DNA from: Tubulanus polymorphus
Lineage: Eukaryota; Animalia; Nemertea
Assembly (NCBI RefSeq): GCF_964204645.1
Contig: NC_134030.1
Span: forward strand, 5,560,778 to 5,624,777
Direction: 5' to 3'
DNA: 64,000 nt
A model generated the notes under the pieces. The model was not told where the DNA came from and searched no databases. It saw nothing but the letters and a program-made list of their open reading frames with translations. Position 1 is the first letter of the stretch; every line of letters begins with the position of its first letter. Positions 3,032-64,000 of this stretch are shown here, one piece after another. The position numbers and the translations under genes were made by a program.

Positions 3032-3608
3032 AATAGACATATTCATGTCACTAATTTCAAGTCGGGTCGTGGTCATCGTATATTTAAATCTGAATTTTCA
3101 TTTGGAATTTACCACTGAAGACGTGAACTTTTTACAACCGTTCGATTTCGAGGTTCATGTTTGAGTGAGACAGCTGTTATTAGCCGAATTTGAATATTCA
3201 ATCCGTGTGATTTGACTGTCAAAGCGATCAGCACGATGATTAATAAGATCGAACTTTGACCCGATGGAATTAGCATCAAGGTTACGACGAGGCGTTGCCC
3301 TTGAGTCAGCTCACGGTGTAAATTCTTTGTACCACATGCGATGATAATTATATTCCAAAATGGCTTGTGATGATTTTATCAGAAATTGAGACAAAGTGAC
3401 TTCTCGAGATCCTTCATCGTCCCAAATCATGAGAGAATATATGTTTTGCATATTATTTATATTCGTTATATTACAGATACAATTAAAAAAAACAAATTCA
3501 TTCATTCATCCAGACATCATCAACCCAAATCATGGTTTTGTGGTTCATTTAACAATTAACACATTGCCCCCAGTAAAAAGCTTAATTAACTTTTCTCCTA
3601 TGTTTCAG

Positions 3609-4420
3609 ACGGCAACGGACCACCGAAACGTTCCAGAACGGCATATACAAGTGCTCAGCTTGTAGAATTGGAGAAAGAATTCCATTATAACCGATATTTG
3701 TGCCGACCGAGGCGCATCGAAATGGCAGCTTTACTGAACTTATCCGAAAGGCAGATCAAAATATGGTTTCAAAATCGACGCATGAAATATAAAAAGGACC
3801 AAAAGCAAAAACTGCTTATGGAAAAAATTCAAATAGAACAGAACAGCATAGGTGGCGCTAGTGGACCACCGGACAGTGTCGAAACTATGGGGAATGCGAA
3901 TTCCGGCTCGGAATCGGAAACGGACAGTTCGAGTACTCCAGTGCCTCAAGGGGGAATTCCATCGGAACCGGGGTCAGATGCTCGCGGTAATCCGGACCAC
4001 GGTCAGAGCCCGCCTAATCGATCGCCTAACATGCCCTGCAGTACACAACAAACGCATATGACCGGTGTCGACTTGCCGAAAGGACATTATACCGGCTTGT
4101 TACAAGACGAACGACAACTACCGAATTCTCCAACTGTCGAGCATCACCACATGAATGCCAACTATGGCATCCAACAGTACAATCAGAACATGCCGTCGAG
4201 CATGCAACAAACGGACAACATGTCTCATTCCACTACTAACGGTCCGCTTCAAAACATGAGTTATATGAGTGGTACCGGGCTAGGACCTGGACCGGGGCCT
4301 ATGCACCTGCCTATTCAGCAGGTACAAGCGACAGATTCGAATGGATACTACTTTAACAATTCCGTCTCGTACTCTCAGGGAACTTATAGCGTATCTCCAC
4401 CGAAATTGACGCATATCTAA
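3609..4420 (+). CDS. Hox3: Hox3 (paralogy group 3) homeobox protein, terminal coding exon; 5'-partial (hexapeptide exon upstream of window)
   Basis: Acceptor ttttctcctatgtttcAG at 3607-3608 (phase 1; in-frame TAA at 3587 just upstream). The frame reads [64 protein letters not shown] (homeodomain 3623-3802), which is diagnostic of Hox3. The C-terminus PKLTHI* matches the Hox3 PKLTHL motif. The ORF-track start at 3668 is an internal TTG. Confidence 0.96.
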
Positions 4421-7560: not shown

Positions 7561-9700
7561 TGTTTACTGTTCTTGGTACAACTGTTTCAGGATTAGAATA
7601 TTCATTTTATGGCCAAAACAGTAGCCTTAGATTGTATTAGATTAGCAGCCTTAGATTGTCTTTATCTGAGCCCTCGAATCCACCACAGCGCCGGGAACGA
7701 GGCAAGGGCTTTTAAACTGTAAGATCTGAAATCTGAATACGAAATATAGATGATCGGTCGGATTTACAATTGTAAATGTCGGTGTTGGTTTTCCTGGTTT
7801 TGGTATACACATTTCCTCAGCCTGGACCGGCAATCGGAAGTCTCGGAATGTGTTAAAGTAAACCAGTCATTCAACTTGACAATCATCGACCCGGCATAGA
7901 TGATGGAAGATTAATTAAAGCATCAGCATTTAGCTTTCAATGGTCAAGATTTTGATCATCCATTTTGAAAATCCATAGTTGCTGCTAGTTCTATTCTATG
8001 CGTTGGAAGAATAGATGACTAACCAAGGTCATAATGTGCTAGTTCTGCTGAACAACATGACATCGTGTCCGATTTGCCCCCGATCTTTCATGCCCCAAAC
8101 GCCCTACCATCGCTGAACCCTTCCCCTTATGACATTTGTCTTGGAGATTGGCTCCTCTATCATCGCCTGTCTCCCTTCGCTTTCATATGATAATAAATAT
8201 TCTTTTTAATCTCGAGATTGGCTGTTTTGCAAGTTTTATCACGGTAACCCCGACATGATCTGTCAATTCTCGGTCTCTCAATCGTTTCTTATGCAAATTT
8301 ACCCGATCGCAAAATTCTCGAAGGTCATTACCGGAACACGGGCTTTGCTGCCTAGGCTGTGCTGCCACCATTAGGTGAACCCAATCACTAATTTTTGCGA
8401 ATAAATAAACATTTTTAAAACTGCATGTCTATTGAGCTTTTCATTTGTCGTGGCGTATAATGACATGAATTTTTAAGATAAACAGAACACTCAAAATGAT
8501 TTCGTAAAGACAAGAAATTTCTAATATATATACGTGTACATAGAGAAAGCTTCACTCTTGCCGACTCCGCACATAATGAATTTGAAAGAAATTATCAGAT
8601 ATTTTCGAGAAAAAAGTATAGTTAATATCTGCATTTGTTTTGAATCTTATGAATATTCAATGAAAACTGAGCAATACCGAACCGCTGCTGCTGCGCCTAT
8701 GTCTTCCACCAAAAATCGATGGAGAGACATAGACATATATATGTATCCATATTGAATGTACAAGGACCGGCAGTGCATACCAGATAGACAATTCACGATT
8801 TTGTTCACGATGATCGTCGTCGCAGGTAAGACGTTTACTCTCCTCAGCGACACTTCCCTGTTCTCCTGTACAATGCTGTTATCTTAACTGTTAAACGAAG
8901 TATATTCAATGCATTTTATTTGTGTGTACTAAGGCTAAACAAAAATGATACCTTGTTTCTCCGCAGCGGTCGGGTCATTTTTGTAAAATATGATAAAATT
9001 CATAAACAGTTCATTTCTATAGCGGCCGGGTCTGTTATGGTAAAATTGATCACGATTTTAAAAAAAGTAATGTATAGGGTAGATAGGCGGCCGGCCGGGT
9101 CAACATTTAAGCTCAGCAGAGCGGAGAAACAAGGTATCAATTTTTTTAGCCTAAATGCACAGTTTTGTGAACTGTTCAATATGTATGGGATACAGTTTAT
9201 AAATAAATCATGTGTAAAATCAGTTTTACCTACATTTTTTCAGTTATGTTTGATACATGTACAAACATAGATTTTATTTCTATTTTGATACATTTATGTT
9301 AGCCAGAACCAAGAGCTCGCCCTCGACAGGCAGGGTCGGTTACTATGTAAAGTTTATTATTTCTTTTCGCTGTCTTATCTCATATGACCTAGATTTATTG
9401 GGATGTGGTCATCGTTGACCTATAATATCGCGCTGGCAGTGATGTAATTCATTGTGCCTTATATCCTCCTTGTACAAATGGTGTATCAAAACTACTGTGG
9501 ACATGTAGCTGTTCACACGTAAAGAGAAGACCCAGGACTACCCTGTACTGTAGGCCTATGTGGTTGGCCTATATACTATGTGGTATAGTCTCACACCCAC
9601 CTTAAAAGATTGAAGCTGCGAAAAAGCTCAAGGCGAGGGGAAGCGAAGGTAAGGTCGTATTTGTAATGCTTTGTTTTGAGTCTTCATCAATTGTGCCCTG

Positions 9701-37900: not shown

Positions 37901-40172
37901 CTTCTAAAATAGCGTTTCAATCAGATTCTATAGGTTTTAGTTCGGTGTATCGTTGCTATACGGATGTTTGGCCGCTCCAACGTATAATTTTCGGATTGGC
38001 TGGACTTCATGCGAATTCTTGATATTTTGGCAAATCCATGTATTTGTATTCCTTCGTCTTTTCATTGTGTTTTTTTTGTGAACGCTCATATAGCCGGCAG
38101 CGGTTTGATCTGAAATTCACATGTTATTTATTCAGTCCAGTCGGCTGTATACGACGCCTAATACATAATTCTGAAATAGATATTCTTATCACATCCACGC
38201 TATCCGTGTCAAGGAAATGGAACTGTATTCCTGAATTCATATTTCGCGTTAACATCAAGGTAACATTTGCATATTTATGAACGTGACGAATCGACTCGAT
38301 TGCCGCCGCTGTATCGACTAGGGTACAATCAGATCGAAGTAGGATAGTTACTGAGCCGACTCCAGAAATCAATGTCTGAAAATTGGATAATTTCTTCGTC
38401 GTATTAAGATGAAAATAATTCATCTAATCTCAACCAGGCTAATAACTCATTCTTAATTGTAAAAGAACGATAATTTTTTTTCAATTCTATTCAGTTCTTA
38501 TGTGATGCTGGCCTTGGAATGACGCTCTGGGATTCATTAGTTTATGAAGGCCATCTAGCCAGTCCGTGTTACTGATTGACCAAATAAATGTCTCTCTTCG
38601 GCGGCTTATCGCATTAGCATGTGGCGTGTCAACTAATGTAATCTCGCGAACTGACAACCGAAGCCAGCCGTGATGTTCGATATAGCGAATATTAATCGGG
38701 CTTCCCAAAATGAAGTTCATACTGCGATGAATGCCAGAAGACCTTTATACAGTGACTTGGCGTCAGTGTCGTTTCCTTCCGTCAACTTCCAGCCTGTAAA
38801 TGCGACGTGTTTTTTTACTTTATCTGTCGTTCGTTGTCTCAGTGTGATAAGCCGTCTAGGTGGCGTTTCGCTACCGAAGATTACGACGTAAAATGATTGA
38901 CGTACGTCCGTCAATTGTCATTCAAAAAACGCTGTTAATTAATCTACTGATATCAAGGGAAATCTGAATAAGGAGGTTGTGTCAGTTGATTGCGAATAAC
39001 CATATGGCATTTTTGCGTCTGTTGTTTCGTTTATGTGTATGAATATAGAATTAAAGACGTATTTAGTACCGACGTAATGAGCGTTTTTACTGAAAGACAG
39101 TCGACGTCTTCAAGACAAAGTAATGGCGGCTTTTTGCTATGGTTTTATTGCGAGCATAATCGACTGGGAAAGAGTCCGTTCTGATTTCCTCTGCTCGCGA
39201 CAGATTCAATTTAAGCCGGGTTTCTGCGCGCTTTCGGCGTGATCTTTTTTCTCTGCCGAAGACATCAAACACTTCCCGTAATTCCTGTTTTAATTTAGAC
39301 ATTGTCCCGTTGATTCGCCATCTACGTCCATCAAATCCTCCGAACGCGCTATCATTAATTGAAGTTGACGTAATAATGCACGCTCTAAAAGCCGGGCATG
39401 CGCATCGGGCAGATCGGTAAGCCGCTCAAATCGTGTGAGTTAATTGAACTCCGATGTCGTTGCATTTTCTCATTTTGGATCGTCGCAAACTATAAGACGT
39501 TGGATTTTTAATATTCAAATGAAGGAAAATCCCCGAACTAAAGTTATAAACTAGAAAAGTAATTGGTTTTTCATAGACAAGTCACTGTCTTTTTCAGTTG
39601 AAGCGCAAGAGCATTTTGACATTTCGACTCAAATCTATATAAGCCCTTTTCGAAAACAACTTTTCTTGAAAATGGTTCATATCACTTGAGTGGAAACGTC
39701 AAAATCATCTTACAGTTTTTCTTCAATTCGGATGCGTTATTCGTAAATAGAAAATCGATTGTTTTCAAATGTGACCCGCGAACGTTATCGCTGAATAATG
39801 TCCACCATTTTGAAAGACATTAGGAATACGAATCGTTGTTTATCCCTTCGTATTTTTTCTGCAATCGTTGACCATTGACATGACAAGCACAAGTGCAAGC
39901 GCGACAAAGCATTCATCATTTATAGCTGCCAAAATGTCAAACGCTAGGTCTCAGTCAGTAGTTCTGCTGCCGTGGACACTAGTCCGGTGATGATGTAATT
40001 TTTCACTGATTTCTCAGGTCATTTATCATAGTTAGTGACGGGCACTTGACCATTTATGACCCTGGGGGATAGTTTGGTCATCAGTTGTGCAATGTTCTAC
40101 ATTAAGAACAACACAGCATGAAATTAACTCAACATTAATGTTAATCGAGTTTTTTTCTATTATGTTTTGCAG
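31954..40172 (+). other. Hox2/pb intron (8219 bp, GT-AG, phase 1)
   Basis: Donor GTGAGT and acceptor ttttttctattatgttttgcAG have compatible phases; the junction codon G|CC encodes Ala. Confidence 0.9.
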
Positions 40173-41893
40173 CCCATGGACAGGCTCAAGGTGCCGGAGG
40201 TAACAACCCGCGACGACTACGCACGGCGTACACGAACGCACAGCTGCTCGAGCTCGAGAAAGAATTCCATTTCAACAAGTATCTCTGCCGACCGAGGAGG
40301 ATCGAAATAGCGGCTTCGTTAGACCTGACCGAGCGTCAGGTGAAAGTATGGTTCCAGAACCGACGCATGAAATACAAACGACAAACTCACAACAGTAACA
40401 AATCTTCCGGCGAGTCGGTCGATGGCGAGGAGGCGGTCAGCAATTTAGCGGACAGCACAACCGAATCGGCGTTAGGCGACAACAAAAGTGATTGCGATGT
40501 TAAGGAGAAAATGGAACCACCTTCCGTCGAAAGCAATAACGAGTCTCTGAAATCGCCGAATATTCTGGGTGATCACGGAGAAACAGTGGCGTCGCCTGGT
40601 GATACTAGTTCGAATGGTCAGGCGTCGCCGAAATCTGGCAATACCCCACCGGACATAGCAATAAAGTCCAGTGACGAGTCAGGGTTTAATACGGACAGGG
40701 AAAAAGTTGCAATTAATATCAAGCAGGGTAGCGCGAACGGGGCACGAAGTCCGGGCAAGAAAAAAGAGTTGCCGCGTACAACAGCGTCGCCTATCGACGA
40801 ATCTTGCAAAAAGAGCGTATTTTCAGACATTAACCTTTCCGCGTATCAACATAAACCCGATATGGGCAACATGTTTTCACAGGCCGAGAAATATCAAAGT
40901 TTCGCACAAGAATATCTACAAGGCAGCACCAGCCCCGGTCCTGCTTTTAGTCAATCAGTTTCTAGTCCCGTTACGTCGTTTTCACGGAATACTGCCGCGG
41001 AATTGGCGAACTACCGAGATTTCAACGGTAGCAACTTTCCGGCTTCTGTCGCGTTGACTTCAGTGACAGGAAAGTCGCCACCGTGTCCCGGCATACAACA
41101 ACAGCAGCAACAGCAACAGCAGCTGCATAGCCTTTATAATTTTCCTATCAGCCAGACGCCGCGATCTCAGCAAAAATCACCGAACCAAGGACAAACTAAT
41201 TCGGCTAATCTAGTTGGCTCTCATGCCCAGAACCATTTCAGTTATCTATACCCACAAACTGTGTACGGAGCCTCGCCGCCGTGCACGAGTCCTACAGGAC
41301 AGGCAATCGGGCAAAGTTTTTCCGGGCAACATTCGTTGGACAACAACCAGGCAGCAGCTTATCAACGATTCTCGCAGGACGCGTTCGCCAAAAGTTCTAA
41401 CGCGTACTCGGGCAACGTTGCTCAGGTGAACGGGCATTTTGTGTCGTCATCAGCGGCCGATCACGTGATCAGACAAGTGACGAACGGTCAAATGAACAAT
41501 AACTACACTCAGGGTGCGAACGATTTCATTTTCAACCAAAAGTATAACTCTCAGAATTATCATCATTTCAACTACCACGCCAATCAGACCGCGTGCCAAC
41601 CTAACCAAATCGGCGGAGAGAACTACGGCCCGACTCCGAACGGCGGTGGCGGTGGCTCTTACGCCGAGATTACGCGCATGGTGCCCGGAAGCCACGGACA
41701 TACAGTGACGAATAATTACAACAACGAACAGATCGCGAACTCGAGCTCATCTCCCGCTTTGAACAATAACGAATGCAGCCCTGGCACGTACGTGTCGTAT
41801 TCAAATTACAACAACGAGTGCCCCATTAATCAAATTAGTAATTATGCACCGTACGCGACACCGTACACAACGGGCTTTTACCCCGAAACTTGA
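40173..41893 (+). CDS. pb: Hox2/proboscipedia exon 2 (homeodomain plus ~500-aa S/N/Q-rich C-terminal region)
   Basis: Homeodomain 40208-40387 [60 protein letters not shown] is diagnostic of PG2. The frame is open to TGA at 41891-41893. Spliced CDS is 1983 nt = 660 aa. Confidence 0.96.
41096..41122 (+). repeat. CAA/CAG (opa-type) repeat encoding Q9 in Hox2
   Basis: caacaacagcagcaacagcaacagcag in frame. Confidence 0.9.
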
Positions 41894-57763: not shown

Positions 57764-58439
57764 ATGAATTCGTCTGGTGACTATACTTTATGTAACTTGG
57801 ACACACGGACGTATACCACACCGTACGGGGCGCATGATTTAGCGAATCCGTACCACCAAGTGGCGTATAATAACAACCAAAACAATGTTCTTATGGATAC
57901 GGGACAGCTCGCGTATTCGCCTCCGTACCACGATATACACAGACTCAGTCCCGTGGATATCTCGTCGCACTACCAACAACAGAACCATAACATGATTCCG
58001 GATGTACATAGCGCCCAACAAGCGGACTATTTGGACCTAACCCCGGTCACAAACACGGACGGGCAGTATATGAATTCTGTAAATTATTATAACAACGTGA
58101 ACCACAGAGGAATAGTGCAAAACGGGGATCATAGTCCGACTGGTTGCAGCGCAGGCGGTGGGGCAAATGGTTATTACACGAATTTAGGAGGCACGGACAC
58201 GTCGAACTCTCCCGTGAATGGTTCTAGTGATTCTATGACATACATTCCACGAAATTCACCGCCGTTGTCGCATCATCCTCATCATCATCCGCATCATCAA
58301 CCAACTACACAACAACAACAACACCATCAAAACCAAGTCGATCTCCAACAACAGGGCCATGGGAACCGCCAGAGCCCCAGTCCGCCAATGGCAACTACTT
58401 ACAAATGGATGCAAATCAAGCGGACACAACCGAAGCCAG
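57764..58439 (+). CDS. lab: Hox1/labial exon 1; 3'-partial (homeobox beyond window)
   Basis: N-terminus MNSSGDYTLCN resembles PG1 MNS..(D/E)Y. His/Gln-rich tract, then the PG1-type hexapeptide TYKWMQIKR. Donor CCAG|GTATGT at 58440, phase 1. Its position 3' of Hox2 is the expected Hox1 slot. Confidence 0.92.
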
Positions 58440-61400
58440 GTATGTATGTTTTGAGTATTCTATAGGTTATTCTATATAGTGTATGTTTTAGCTATATTCA
58501 TATAGGCCTACCCCGCATGACCCTACACGAGGTTTGGTCATATATTTTGTCTTATTTGCTGTTTTCACTTTATTTAACCCATCAAAACGTGTTATTAGCA
58601 AGATTTGGTGCGTCTCGCTTCACTTTTATTCTGCGCTTTACTCCGATTTAGGCCTGTCATGTGTTTCTCGTTTTCGGCGTCATAGGTCTTCGGCGAACAT
58701 TTGCGTATGCAAACTGTCTATATCCTGTCTGGAAGAAAAAGATATCGTATAAAAGCTGCTAAAGGCTAGAGATTTCAGACTGCGGCTGTTTTGATTTCAA
58801 TTGAAAAATTGCGTCCCGGTCGTCACGTTTTCATTCATCTCGAAAACAACCATGCGCTGGGTCAGACAGTCGTCCCACTGACAAAATGATTTTCTTTTCG
58901 CCCTTTATGGAATAATCTTCTTAAAATTTACCTATTTTGTGTCAGCGACTGATGGATTTAACCGACCGCTATTAATACTTTCTGTTGCAATTGTCCACTA
59001 AGAAGTAAATCCCCTTTCGTCTGTGATTTGATAACAAACAATTTTTATTAACTGAGATTTTATGTCGAAGAAACGAATCCGTATTGCCAGAAAACATTAT
59101 ATATTCGTGGTATCTGTACTTGTATCAATTCTATATGATTTAATGTCATATGACATTTATGAATATGGTGTATTATAGACTAAAGCGAAAGTCCTACGGG
59201 ATTTATTATGATGTTTTTTAGGTCAGGTCATCCCGGGTCAGACCTGGCTGTCGCCTATATTACACCACCGGGTAATCCATTACAACATATTGTCAACGGG
59301 ACATTCTCTTTTGGTAACCGGGAAAGCTTCTTCGAATACATTTCCACCTAGATAGGCATGGAACAACGAAACAGCGCTCGCGCGCGCAGGGTCATAAATC
59401 TTCCCCAACAAGACACTCGTTCGTCTCGCGGCTTCCACAAAGATTCGCGCAGCTAAACGGTGCCATTAATTTTCCCCAGGATATAAAGCAAAATACAAGA
59501 GCGTTAGGAGGTTTGACAGTTGCATCTCAGAGCCCGGCGTACAATGCCTGCTAGTAATGATTTATGGTCTACTGTCCCGAGGCTTGATGGCAATATTAAT
59601 GGCTTTTACCGGCCTGATGATTTCCACCCGAGCTAGGCTGGCTAATGTAGGCTCAATTCCCCTGCATTGCGCGCAATGAATTGTAATCAGCATCGTTCAA
59701 GGGCCGTATTTGGTAATTACGTATATTTGAATGTAATCAGGCCTTAACGATGGCTTATATGATACCCGTTTTATGAAAAATGATCTGGTCGCTATTTCCC
59801 GCGAGATGCTTCTAAATAAATGGAAATTAACGAAACAGGCGAAATCAAAGTGAAAACTTTTTTGTCAATCATAATATGCAATGCCCACGAGAAACAGTCA
59901 GTCGATCGCTGTTTGTTTCAAATAAAACTTCAGTTTTTAATCGGAGTCATGTAAGTTTGAGCATTAAAAATGAAATTACTCGAGGCCCTTGAGGTTTTGA
60001 TAGCGTTGTTCCAAAGTGATCATAAATGCATATGTAAAACGTCATGTAATATTATTGTCCCTTGACTTGGAATAATGAAATCAACTTAGAAGCCAGCGAA
60101 ACGGTCGTGCGATGGAAATTTAGCTTTTGATGAAAATTGCCAAAGTTTTTTTCGACTTCCTTATCGGTATGTTTCTCCTTCGGTTTCAACAGGCTTGCTA
60201 TATACGCAAGTCTCTATCTTAGCAGTGGTTCGGTTGCTAGGGGTCTTAGCATATTTACTCAAATAGTCAATTTCATTCTTCCCTATCGTTGAGTCAATAT
60301 TTAACGGCAACAAAGACAGGCGTATACGATATGTTCAAAAAATACTCTCCGATTATAGACTACGGTATTCGGATCAACTTGGAAAAACACCGTTTAAAGG
60401 CATCTTTTTACCACTAGTTTCCATCTCTCGATGTAAAGTCTACGACAGGCGAGTTTCCTTGAATGTGCAATAGATGCTTCCTCAAATTCTGTCCCAACTA
60501 ATCGTGTGTACATGTGCAATACAGGAATTGTACCACTTACTACGTACATGTACCAGTAATCTAACAAAAATCATGATTAAAAATGCTGTTGAACTCGGTG
60601 ACGTTCTGTATACGTTATTGAATAGGACAGGTATTAATATTGACTTTGTCTAATTAGCGTGTGCTGCTTTACGCGATAATCTTCCAGCGTATGCGAAACC
60701 ACAAGCTCCGATGTCCCTGCATTCCGTGTCATTTTCTCTGCTAGGCGCGTCGATTTCTGCCTGCGTGAATCACGGCTGTAGTCGCAGATCAATTATTTGT
60801 TAAACTATCGACCAATTAAAGTATGATCAATAGGGAAAACATGCCTCGGCTATTGAAATCAAAGGATTTTTTCAATTCGCATTTTCTCTTTTTGGTTCCA
60901 GACGAGCAATAACATTGTGCTTATCGAATAAAGCATATAAAAGCTGCCTAATTATTATATACTATGTTATTATAGATTCTGCGTATAGGAAAACAACCTG
61001 ACGCTTGCAAAATTTCAATCTGGCGCAAGGGAAAACAAATCCGACACATTGTGCTGGGAACAATGGAACATACGATGCAGCAGAAATCGTTCAACTGTGT
61101 CTTTTTTATTGCCGGAATTAAAATTTAATTTTCTAATATCAGATTCGCGATTACGGGCAACGTTCTGAATTTAGTTATTATGACAATTCGACGCAGAATT
61201 AATCTTCCACGACCGGTTTTCATCGTAAATCCCGGGTCGAAATGAACTCTTTTTAACGTTTTAATGAGGCAATTTCGTCACCATGTGTATAAATAATTGA
61301 TATTTACAATTATTTGGAATCTAGTCATTTTCTGCTGTCTGCGTCGAGCGTGAAGAGTTACTCGAGCGTCATTTACAATTTTTGCTGTTGAATTGAAATT

Positions 61401-63793
61401 TGAAATATGATTCCGCGCCGCTGTTCCGCGTTTAGAGTTAATTTGCTGATGCAATCGACGCGCTGGAAAAAAAACTCATTTCATTCCAGCCATCGCGCGG
61501 TTAATCTCGAAAAAAGTTTGAAAGTTCAACTAAATGTTGCAAATTGCCGAGTGGCTTCAAATCGTTATCTCTACTCAACTGTAGCTGGCGCCACTGTCTA
61601 GTAGTAAACAATTCATTCTTAGAAAAACTCCCAAATTATTTTGAAGTGCTGTAGGTTGAAGATCTTATAATGTTCATTTCTTTAAGTCTCTGCTTAGATG
61701 ATTGCATAGACATTTTAACCATCTTCCTTGTATAACTATAGTAGTTGTTGAATTGTTGACCAAATATTTGGTTCTCAGGAAACAAAATGTTTAAAACTCG
61801 GTTTTCTTTATTCCTTATTCATCAAAACTTTGATAGAAAATATGGGTAATCCCGCACTTATAATGAAAAATGAAGTCCGAAATGTTTCTTGAGCTAGTTA
61901 TTCATTCGACGTTTCGAATTCAACCTAATAGTCAACACACACACGAAGTGAGCGCAAGAAATATTTTAGATTTTATATTTCATTATTCTTGTGGGATTTT
62001 CTATGCTATCACCACAGCACAGCACAGAGTGTTTCATCAGTGGTAATCTTTGATAGGAGTCGTTAATAATCTGTGTATTTTCCTATACATCAGCGGGGCA
62101 TGGATTTAATTGTATTTTTCTTTTTATTTCATCTAATTCACTCGGAAGTGTCGTGTTTTATACATCCTCCTATCCGCACATCTAGCATTTCTACGCCATT
62201 TCTCCGAATGGTTTTCATTGTTCGGATTAAAATCGGCGAGAACAAAGAGATGAAGTTAATTGTTTCGCTCTTACTCAGAAGATTTGTATTGGATTTTTCT
62301 TCATTATGCGCATTGTCGCAGGCAATCACGTCTCGTGTACTGGATGCATGTTGCCTGTCAAATGACCATGCCCAGCAATCAAACCACCTTCACTAGGGAG
62401 AAAAGAATCAAATCTACTCCAGTTTATCGCAATTTATATGCTTCTAAAGGGACGTGTTACCTTTCCGTTGTTAATTTGAAACAGTTATCAGTGTGGCTGC
62501 AATAGCTCGCGGCGATTATGAGTGTGTCTCGTGCGACATCCTAGCGAATAGGTGGAAGTGTAGACGTTGCGAACAGAACCAGACTCGTCGGTCCAGGATT
62601 CTTGGGTTCGAATCCCGCAGTGGCGAGAGTGTCCTGGTTGGCTTTATCTCAGTGTCCTTCCAGCCTAAGAAGGAAAGTAAACCTTGAAATCTCTCCTAAT
62701 AGCTGGAAGGCGCTTAAACGAGTGGGAAATGTGATGAATGAGCATGTGTAGATGCGTGCAGTAGAATATTCGAAAGGAAACTAGTAATTTCATGGGAATC
62801 AACGTAGAAATCATGTTGTTTCTGTCTTGTTTGATCTAACGTCAGCACTCTGTAATGCTATTCATCGCTTAGTGGCTGTTACTATGTTATATACGAATTA
62901 CTCCTGTGTTCAAATTTATCATCATCACCTGCCAATAAAGGGCAAATGATTTTAGAACGCTCAACACTCGTGTACGAGCATAAATCATACTCAAGCATCG
63001 ACTTCAAATACTACTCGATAGCCATATAATGGATCGCAACCACTTTAGAGACTGGATATTAATTGATGAATACCGGTCTGCGATACGTAATTATGACAAC
63101 TGGCGTTAATGTTATCCTCGCGCGGCGTCAAGTGTCAGTGAAAATTCATTTTTCAAATTCAATCAACGCGCCTCTCGGCTTCTATATATCTGTGGCTCCA
63201 TAGAAGATGAACTCCGCTTTTTATTTTACTGTAGAAAACATACTGTACAAAGAAACCTATATCTATACGATACGGTTGAGTCGGATTTTATCAATATCTA
63301 GCACTTGTCAATAACACTTGCTCCACCACCGTGTTTAAGTTAGCGAAATTTGTGAACGAATGTATATAACCGTTGACTTTTGTTCTGTACATCTTTCTTG
63401 TGCTCCTTAGAATGACATATTTGCGATACTAGTCAATAAAGTTTTGATTTGATTTGCTTTTGCTTCGGTTGTTCAGTTGGCGATTTGATTTATTACAGAC
63501 TGATTATCTAACTAGATGAATAGTTCACTTTTTGTCCAAACCCTCAACCCACCTACCAGTAATTAGTTGAGATAATTGCTCGTAAAATCCGCCGAACACT
63601 ATGTCTATAATTTTTTTACCGAGTCAAAAGAGAGTCCAAAGAACACATTGTCCGGTTCTAAATGCAGAAATTAGGGCATATTCAGTTTAAAATTCTACTA
63701 CTTACTTTGAAACCTACTTCGATCTTTTATAGTAGCATTTTTGCCATTCGCAGATTTTTTTATTCAAAACGATTCACTCTTTTCTCTTTGCAG

Positions 63794-63835
63794 GGAATAT
63801 TAACAATCACCAGAAAATGGCCTATATAACACAGG
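63794..63835 (+). CDS. Candidate 42-nt internal microexon of Hox1 (linker peptide GNINNHQKMAYITQ)
   Basis: Acceptor cactcttttctctttgcAG and donor AGG|GTAAGT. Length is a multiple of 3, and the only stop-free frame is the phase-1 frame required by Hox1 exon 1. Confidence 0.6.
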
Positions 63836-64000
63836 GTAAGTAAATCAGCATCGTGCTAAAAAATTGCTATTCCGCTTTACTATGGGTCTCGGTTGTTACT
63901 ATGGTATAGTATCGACTCGTAACAAGGAAATAGTTGCATAGTTATACACCGCCAAGCGTATCGGCTATCATTACCAATCTGTTAACCATGTGCACAGATC

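Follow-up and report, generated by a model that had tools for sequence, protein, structure and literature searches.

Hox proteins owe part of their specificity to the tethering of the hexapeptide to the homeodomain during DNA binding with PBX/Exd, and variation of the linker between the two by splicing is a classic feature of Drosophila Ubx. The mI, mII and b elements of this gene are very short in-frame segments located between YPWM and the homeodomain, where they lengthen a disordered linker (PMC4186791). The linker residues encoded by the Ubx microexons are themselves disordered and affect partner binding (PMC4186791). In the human HOXB1–PBX1–DNA complex (PDB 1B72), the hexapeptide, linker and homeodomain are laid out as in the gene described here. 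In the literature searched, we found no description of splicing-encoded linker variation in the labial/Hox1 group, no description of extra Hox1 linker coding sequence or microexons in nemerteans, and no paper joining microexon, Hox, hexapeptide and linker. Here, we report the analysis of a 64,000-nt stretch of DNA (the window; G000:C6:5560778-5624777) from the palaeonemertean Tubulanus polymorphus, in which positions 63794-63835 of the + strand very probably constitute a genuine internal coding microexon of Hox1/labial. Like the Ubx and pb linker microexons, the segment preserves the frame and is placed between the hexapeptide and the homeodomain. Nevertheless, there are clear differences from Ubx: the two genes belong to different paralog groups and their short segments show no sequence similarity, and the Ubx elements are alternatively spliced to give stage- and tissue-specific isoforms, whereas only inclusion has been seen in Tubulanus Hox1.

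The coding part of Hox1 exon 1 occupies 57764..58439 (+ strand), and its translation of 225 residues is 100% identical to the N-terminal part (residues 1-225) of RefSeq protein XP_074652265.1 (P0001), which is 347 aa long and is named only 'uncharacterized protein LOC141906793'. The nearest relatives of this protein are the Hox1/labial proteins of nemerteans, annelids and brachiopods, together with vertebrate HoxA1/B1; the best of them are Chaetopterus CH-Hox1, MaLab, PcLab, brachiopod Labial and vertebrate HoxA1/B1, and the top relative with a solved structure is HOXB1 in PDB 1B72 (E 1e-31). Its homeodomain is of the labial type and is preceded by a hexapeptide with the core YKWM, one of the two forms (YKWM or FDWM) taken as diagnostic. 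This PBX/Exd contact motif is encoded at 58400..58411 (+), corresponds to residues 213-216 of the RefSeq protein and is aligned to the HOXB1 hexapeptide in 1B72. Two homeoboxes lie upstream of Hox1 on the same strand, one of Hox3 type (~3.7 kb into the window) and one of pb type (~40.3 kb). From these relatives, the match to 1B72 and the two upstream homeoboxes, it follows that the gene is orthologous to Hox1/labial and stands at the anterior end of the cluster. It lies at the 3'/anterior end beside Hox2/pb, and the Hox3-type, pb/Hox2-type and Hox1 genes form a collinear anterior Hox cluster of at least 70 kb. Read along the + strand, the order is Hox3-type (~3,580-3,940), pb/Hox2-type (~40,170-40,530) and Hox1 (57764-58439).

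The reading frame starts at the ATG at 57764, and exon 1 runs for 676 nt (225 codons plus 1 nt) to 58439, where it closes in phase 1 after ...TYKWMQIKRTQPKP and is followed by GTATGT. The first intron segment (58440..63793, +) measures 5,354 nt with GT..AG ends. Its acceptor at 63771..63793 (+), gattcactcttttctctttgcAG, combines a TTCAC branch-point-like element, a tract with 16/18 pyrimidines and CAG, and its last base is 63793. The 42-nt microexon (63794..63835, +) is of phase 1-1 and corresponds to residues 226-239 of the RefSeq protein; the donor GTAAGT follows at 63836..63841 (+) in the context AGG|GTAAGT. With the G carried over from exon 1, the microexon is open and reads GNINNHQKMAYITQ(G), contributing N-I-N-N-H-Q-K-M-A-Y-I-T-Q and restoring the split Gly codon, while the remaining two frames each contain TAA. 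The second intron segment, of 9,920 nt on the + strand, begins within the window (63836..64000) and ends at window-equivalent position 73755, so that the microexon divides a Hox1 intron of 15,316 nt into 5,354 and 9,920 nt. Beyond the window, the downstream DNA carries the homeobox exon (L003:533-858, starting at window-equivalent 73756), which opens with GT AAA ATC after ttgcag, placing it in phase 1 and closing the frame. The initial annotation, made from the window sequence, had proposed exactly 42 nt between a near-consensus acceptor and an AGG|GTAAGT donor, ~5.35 kb into the Hox1 intron and open only in the phase-1 frame left by exon 1; all of this is borne out by our reading, and the phase of the homeobox exon, which it had named as a possible refutation, agrees with the proposal. 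Compared with the neighbouring exons, the microexon has splice sites of equal or greater strength. The microexon with its flanks is single-copy in the assembly, as is exon 1, and an exonised repeat is thereby ruled out as its origin. We also considered the microexon acceptor as a duplicate of the homeobox-exon acceptor, but rejected this origin, since the two resemble each other in the splice signals alone.

The same annotation had further expected the exon to be hidden and probably missed by a gene predictor, which is not the case. XP_074652265.1 contains GNINNHQKMAYITQ, within the longer stretch KPGNINNHQKMAYITQGKIP, and reads ...KRTQPKPGNINNHQKMAYITQGKIPTDHYGF... at this point; its length is the sum 225 + 1 + 14 + 107 = 347 aa, and hence the NCBI pipeline had already placed the microexon. 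The protein stands alone in its 90% cluster and bears no isoform label.

Evidence that the segment is spliced into RNA comes from one contig of one run. Six public T. polymorphus runs are available, five of which (5/6) contain words of exon 1, and four were compared with window positions 58100-64000 (5,901 letters). In run X2, a 2,202-nt contig with a depth of 31 covers exon 1 up to 58439, joins 63794 and spans the 42 nt. Precisely 5,354 nt, bounded by GT..AG, are left out at the first joint (reported as 58436>63791, 'cut +3'). Beyond the microexon, the contig continues with 30 letters identical to L003:537-566 of the homeobox exon (0 mismatches); the first four letters of that exon, GTAA, are shared with the start of the intron, and hence the loose end of the contig begins after 63839. 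Both predicted junctions, 58439>63794 and 63835>73756, are thus present in one RNA-derived molecule, and they match the coordinates predicted for a true exon in the Hox1 hexapeptide–homeodomain linker exactly. At 42 nt the segment is internal, falls below the limit of ~51 nt for a coding microexon, has functional AG/GT sites and occurs in mRNA. As the RNA used for the RefSeq model probably came from the project that also yielded X2, the two lines of evidence would not be independent.

The other runs compared were less informative. In runs X3 and X4, short contigs were scattered over much of the intron and over exon 1 (20/30 and 19/30 bins, respectively); they look DNA-like and are uninformative on splicing. 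Run X5 placed no contigs on window 58100-64000. Two features of X3 and X4 were recorded in passing. Short contigs at 58130, 59908 and 60828 share a foreign end of 11-12 letters, namely GATGGACGAACC or this sequence reverse-complemented; it has the look of a linker or adapter from the library and not of a biological feature. In addition, contigs of both runs depart from the reference at 62220 with an identical foreign tail of 185 nt, and the word depth is raised at ~62040-62236; this break inside the Hox1 intron probably marks the edge of a repeat or an insertion that is polymorphic.

As judged from X2, the dominant mRNA in the material sampled carries the microexon, which is most likely constitutive. 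This is a deduction, as contigs give no isoform ratios and lose rare variants. Among the contigs and loose ends of X2, a single run, no 58439>73756 joint was seen and only the inclusion form appeared. A different reading treats the exon as a regulated cassette, in which inclusion or skipping according to tissue or stage switches the linker between the ancestral length and a form longer by 14 aa, modulating cooperation with PBX/Exd. The phase 1-1 symmetry fits this idea, since skipping keeps the frame and restores a linker of the ancestral type, and so do the alternatively spliced linker microexons of Drosophila Ubx (PMC4186791) and the RefSeq Hox1 isoforms of Lingula anatina, which differ by 10 linker residues through two donors 30 nt apart. 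However, the X2 contig crosses both junctions unbroken and without a skipped form, RefSeq holds a single Hox1 isoform for Tubulanus and likewise for Lineus, and the Maculaura cDNA has the residues of its microexons. The near-consensus splice sites also speak against it, as such sites would be more typical of constitutive exons. Taken together, a regulated cassette seems unlikely, and a minor or stage-specific skipped form is possible.

Neural microexons that depend on SRRM3/4 (eMIC) are recognized by a UGC motif near the 3' splice site and by neural-specific inclusion. TTGCAG is present at the microexon acceptor, but it is also present at the acceptor of the constitutive homeobox exon.

It could further be argued that the X2 contig arose as an assembly chimera or from intron-less DNA, since there is one contig only, Logan contigs can be chimeric and the run type of X2 is unrecorded. 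We consider this very improbable: both joints fall, without mismatches, exactly on GT..AG boundaries that had been predicted beforehand, and in the genome exon 1 and the microexon region are both single-copy. We also rejected a retrocopy as the origin of this joined contig, because the assembly contains exon 1 only once. Least tenable is a chance intronic pseudoexon that never enters mRNA, an explanation to which the abundance of AG...GT pairs in long introns and three additional frame-compatible candidates found in the 15.3-kb intron under relaxed criteria lend some colour, but which the spliced X2 contig with both junctions effectively refutes, the segment being also part of the RefSeq model and the sole candidate under strict criteria. 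The strict filter (at least 14/18 pyrimidines, YAG and G|GTAAGT) was applied to both strands of 93 kb, and 63794-63835 was the only length-symmetric open candidate. The weaker frame-compatible AG...GTRAG candidates lie in L002, beyond the window, at window-equivalent 65413-65460, 65849-65944 and 72578-72592; none of the three occurs in the X2 transcript contig.

With the genuine, probably constitutive microexon as our preferred reading, we compared the length of the linker, counted as residues from WM to RTNF. The distance is 41 residues in Tubulanus and 27 with the microexon skipped, against 24 in Callorhinchus HoxA1 and 24 in the chiton Acanthochitona; among other nemerteans it is 47 in Lineus, 48 in Maculaura and 55 in Pantinonemertes. 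Without the microexon, the Tubulanus linker would thus have a Hox1 length of the ancestral type. The skipped reading, KRTQPKP-G-KIPTDHYGFAPHQPNTGRTNF (KRTQPKP-G-KIPTDHYGF...), aligns with the vertebrate Hox1 linker, which places the microexon in an ancient phase-1 Hox1 intron. The same phase-1 intron occurs in the scallop Mizuhopecten, whose Hox1 consists simply of two exons. The Tubulanus microexon is an insertion into the ancestral hexapeptide–homeobox intron of Hox1.

Extra linker residues also occur in the Hox1 orthologues of other nemerteans. In the RefSeq model of Lineus longissimus Hox1 (XP_064644286.1), two microexons with good splice sites lie in the ancestral phase-1 hexapeptide–homeobox intron, the first of 30 nt (L005:12654-12683) and the second of 33 nt (L005:16935-16967), both of phase 1-1. 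MaLab of Maculaura alaskensis contains the residues of both. The MaLab sequence was obtained from a developmental transcriptome with cDNA cloning and RACE, in a paper that is silent on splicing and introns (PMC4426647). The Pantinonemertes lab cDNA has an insert of 32 aa at the same linker site. Tubulanus resembles Lineus and Maculaura in having extra linker residues that, in Lineus, also come from phase 1-1 microexons, but Lineus has two (30 + 33 nt) where Tubulanus has one of 42 nt, and the Lineus peptides PSAMNRDIS and SPWGGECYIS give no convincing alignment with the Tubulanus NINNHQKMAYITQ. Their likeness is limited to Y-I-S/T close to the 3' end (A-Y-I-T-Q versus C-Y-I-S-S-Q). Low-stringency tblastn searches of the Tubulanus exon against the Lineus intron, and of the Lineus and Pantinonemertes inserts against the Tubulanus intron, returned only chance-level matches of 4-6 residues. 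An FSPW match at L002:~7652 was considered as a Lineus-like exon in Tubulanus and rejected, as it has no acceptor. The linker microexons of Tubulanus and Lineus may nevertheless be homologous. Neither closer palaeonemertean relatives nor skipped-isoform proteins came to light: word searches yielded no more than four Hox1 proteins from nemerteans, and an exhaustive search contributed, in addition, Hox1 of Platynereis and an anonymous metagenome fragment of 501 nt. As far as these sequences indicate, nemertean Hox1 genes generally carry extra linker coding sequence, in Lineus in the form of microexons.

Outside Nemertea, the RefSeq Hox1 isoforms X1 and X2 of Lingula anatina differ by GEQDGNHVNK (10 linker residues), owing to two exon-1 donors 30 nt apart, ACAG|GTGAGC and AAAG|GTAAAC (L007:1286-1318). 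As in Tubulanus, this is a spiralian Hox1 gene, and its linker is modelled in two lengths that are both of phase 1; the difference is that Lingula, in RefSeq predictions, uses alternative 5' splice sites in exon 1 and has no separate cassette exon. Splice-based variation of the Hox1 linker is therefore predicted in another spiralian, by a different mechanism. The motif SPWGG of the second Lineus microexon (heteronemerteans P0002/P0013) is found again in the Hox1 linker of Platynereis dumerilii (P0126), and the Chaetopterus Hox1 linker (P0010) has SPYKG in its place. SPWGG may be an old spiralian linker element, and linker inserts at this site may then be older than Nemertea. At the equivalent place, ascidian Hox1 proteins read AYYTHNK/VYYTQNK. 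The likeness of A-Y-I-T-Q-G-K to the ascidian A-Y-Y-T-H-N-K was examined as a possible counterpart of the microexon; exon 2 of Clavelina Hox1 simply begins with these residues, which do not form a microexon, and we keep the match as a weak lead only. Two further observations concern homeobox introns. In Clavelina lepadiformis Hox1 (L009:6098-6280, 7896-8165), the homeobox is interrupted by an additional intron following ...LNETQV. A metagenome fragment (P0127; L008) has an apparent intron at the spot of the Clavelina homeobox intron, together with a Tubulanus-like KVPDYGFSPNQSNTGRTNF arm.

As for function, the primary transcript is spliced at 58439>63794 and 63835>73756 to give an mRNA for the 347-aa protein, and the microexon lengthens the WM-to-RTNF distance from the ancestral-type 27 to 41 residues. 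The 14 residues are inserted between the hexapeptide and the homeodomain's N-terminal arm, presumably extending a flexible tether, and since the linker is flexible in other Hox proteins, a longer tether may alter the geometry or the strength of cooperative binding with PBX/Exd. The linker of HOXB1 in 1B72 is 18 residues shorter in the alignment, with the gap mostly over the microexon residues. In view of this gap and of the disorder and partner effects of the Ubx linker, the insertion could modify PBX/Exd cooperation, and the microexon may thus alter the interaction with PBX/Exd.

That the exon acts as a regulated cassette toggling the Hox1 linker and that linker microexons are also an old nemertean, or wider spiralian, feature is a combination that we hold to be quite doubtful; if it were true, the labial group would have a splicing-based tuning of PBX cooperation analogous to that of Ubx. 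The practical value of the finding is limited, as RefSeq already annotates the exon and only its inclusion has been seen, and what the locus offers is a modest evo-devo curiosity: a real, probably constitutive Hox linker microexon and not a missed exon. The present analysis adds that this microexon is an insertion into the ancestral Hox1 intron and that extra linker coding sequence is a general feature of nemertean Hox1. The 14-aa microexon of Tubulanus, together with the two in a second nemertean class, suggests that the Hox1 linker was remodelled repeatedly, or long ago, in Nemertea.
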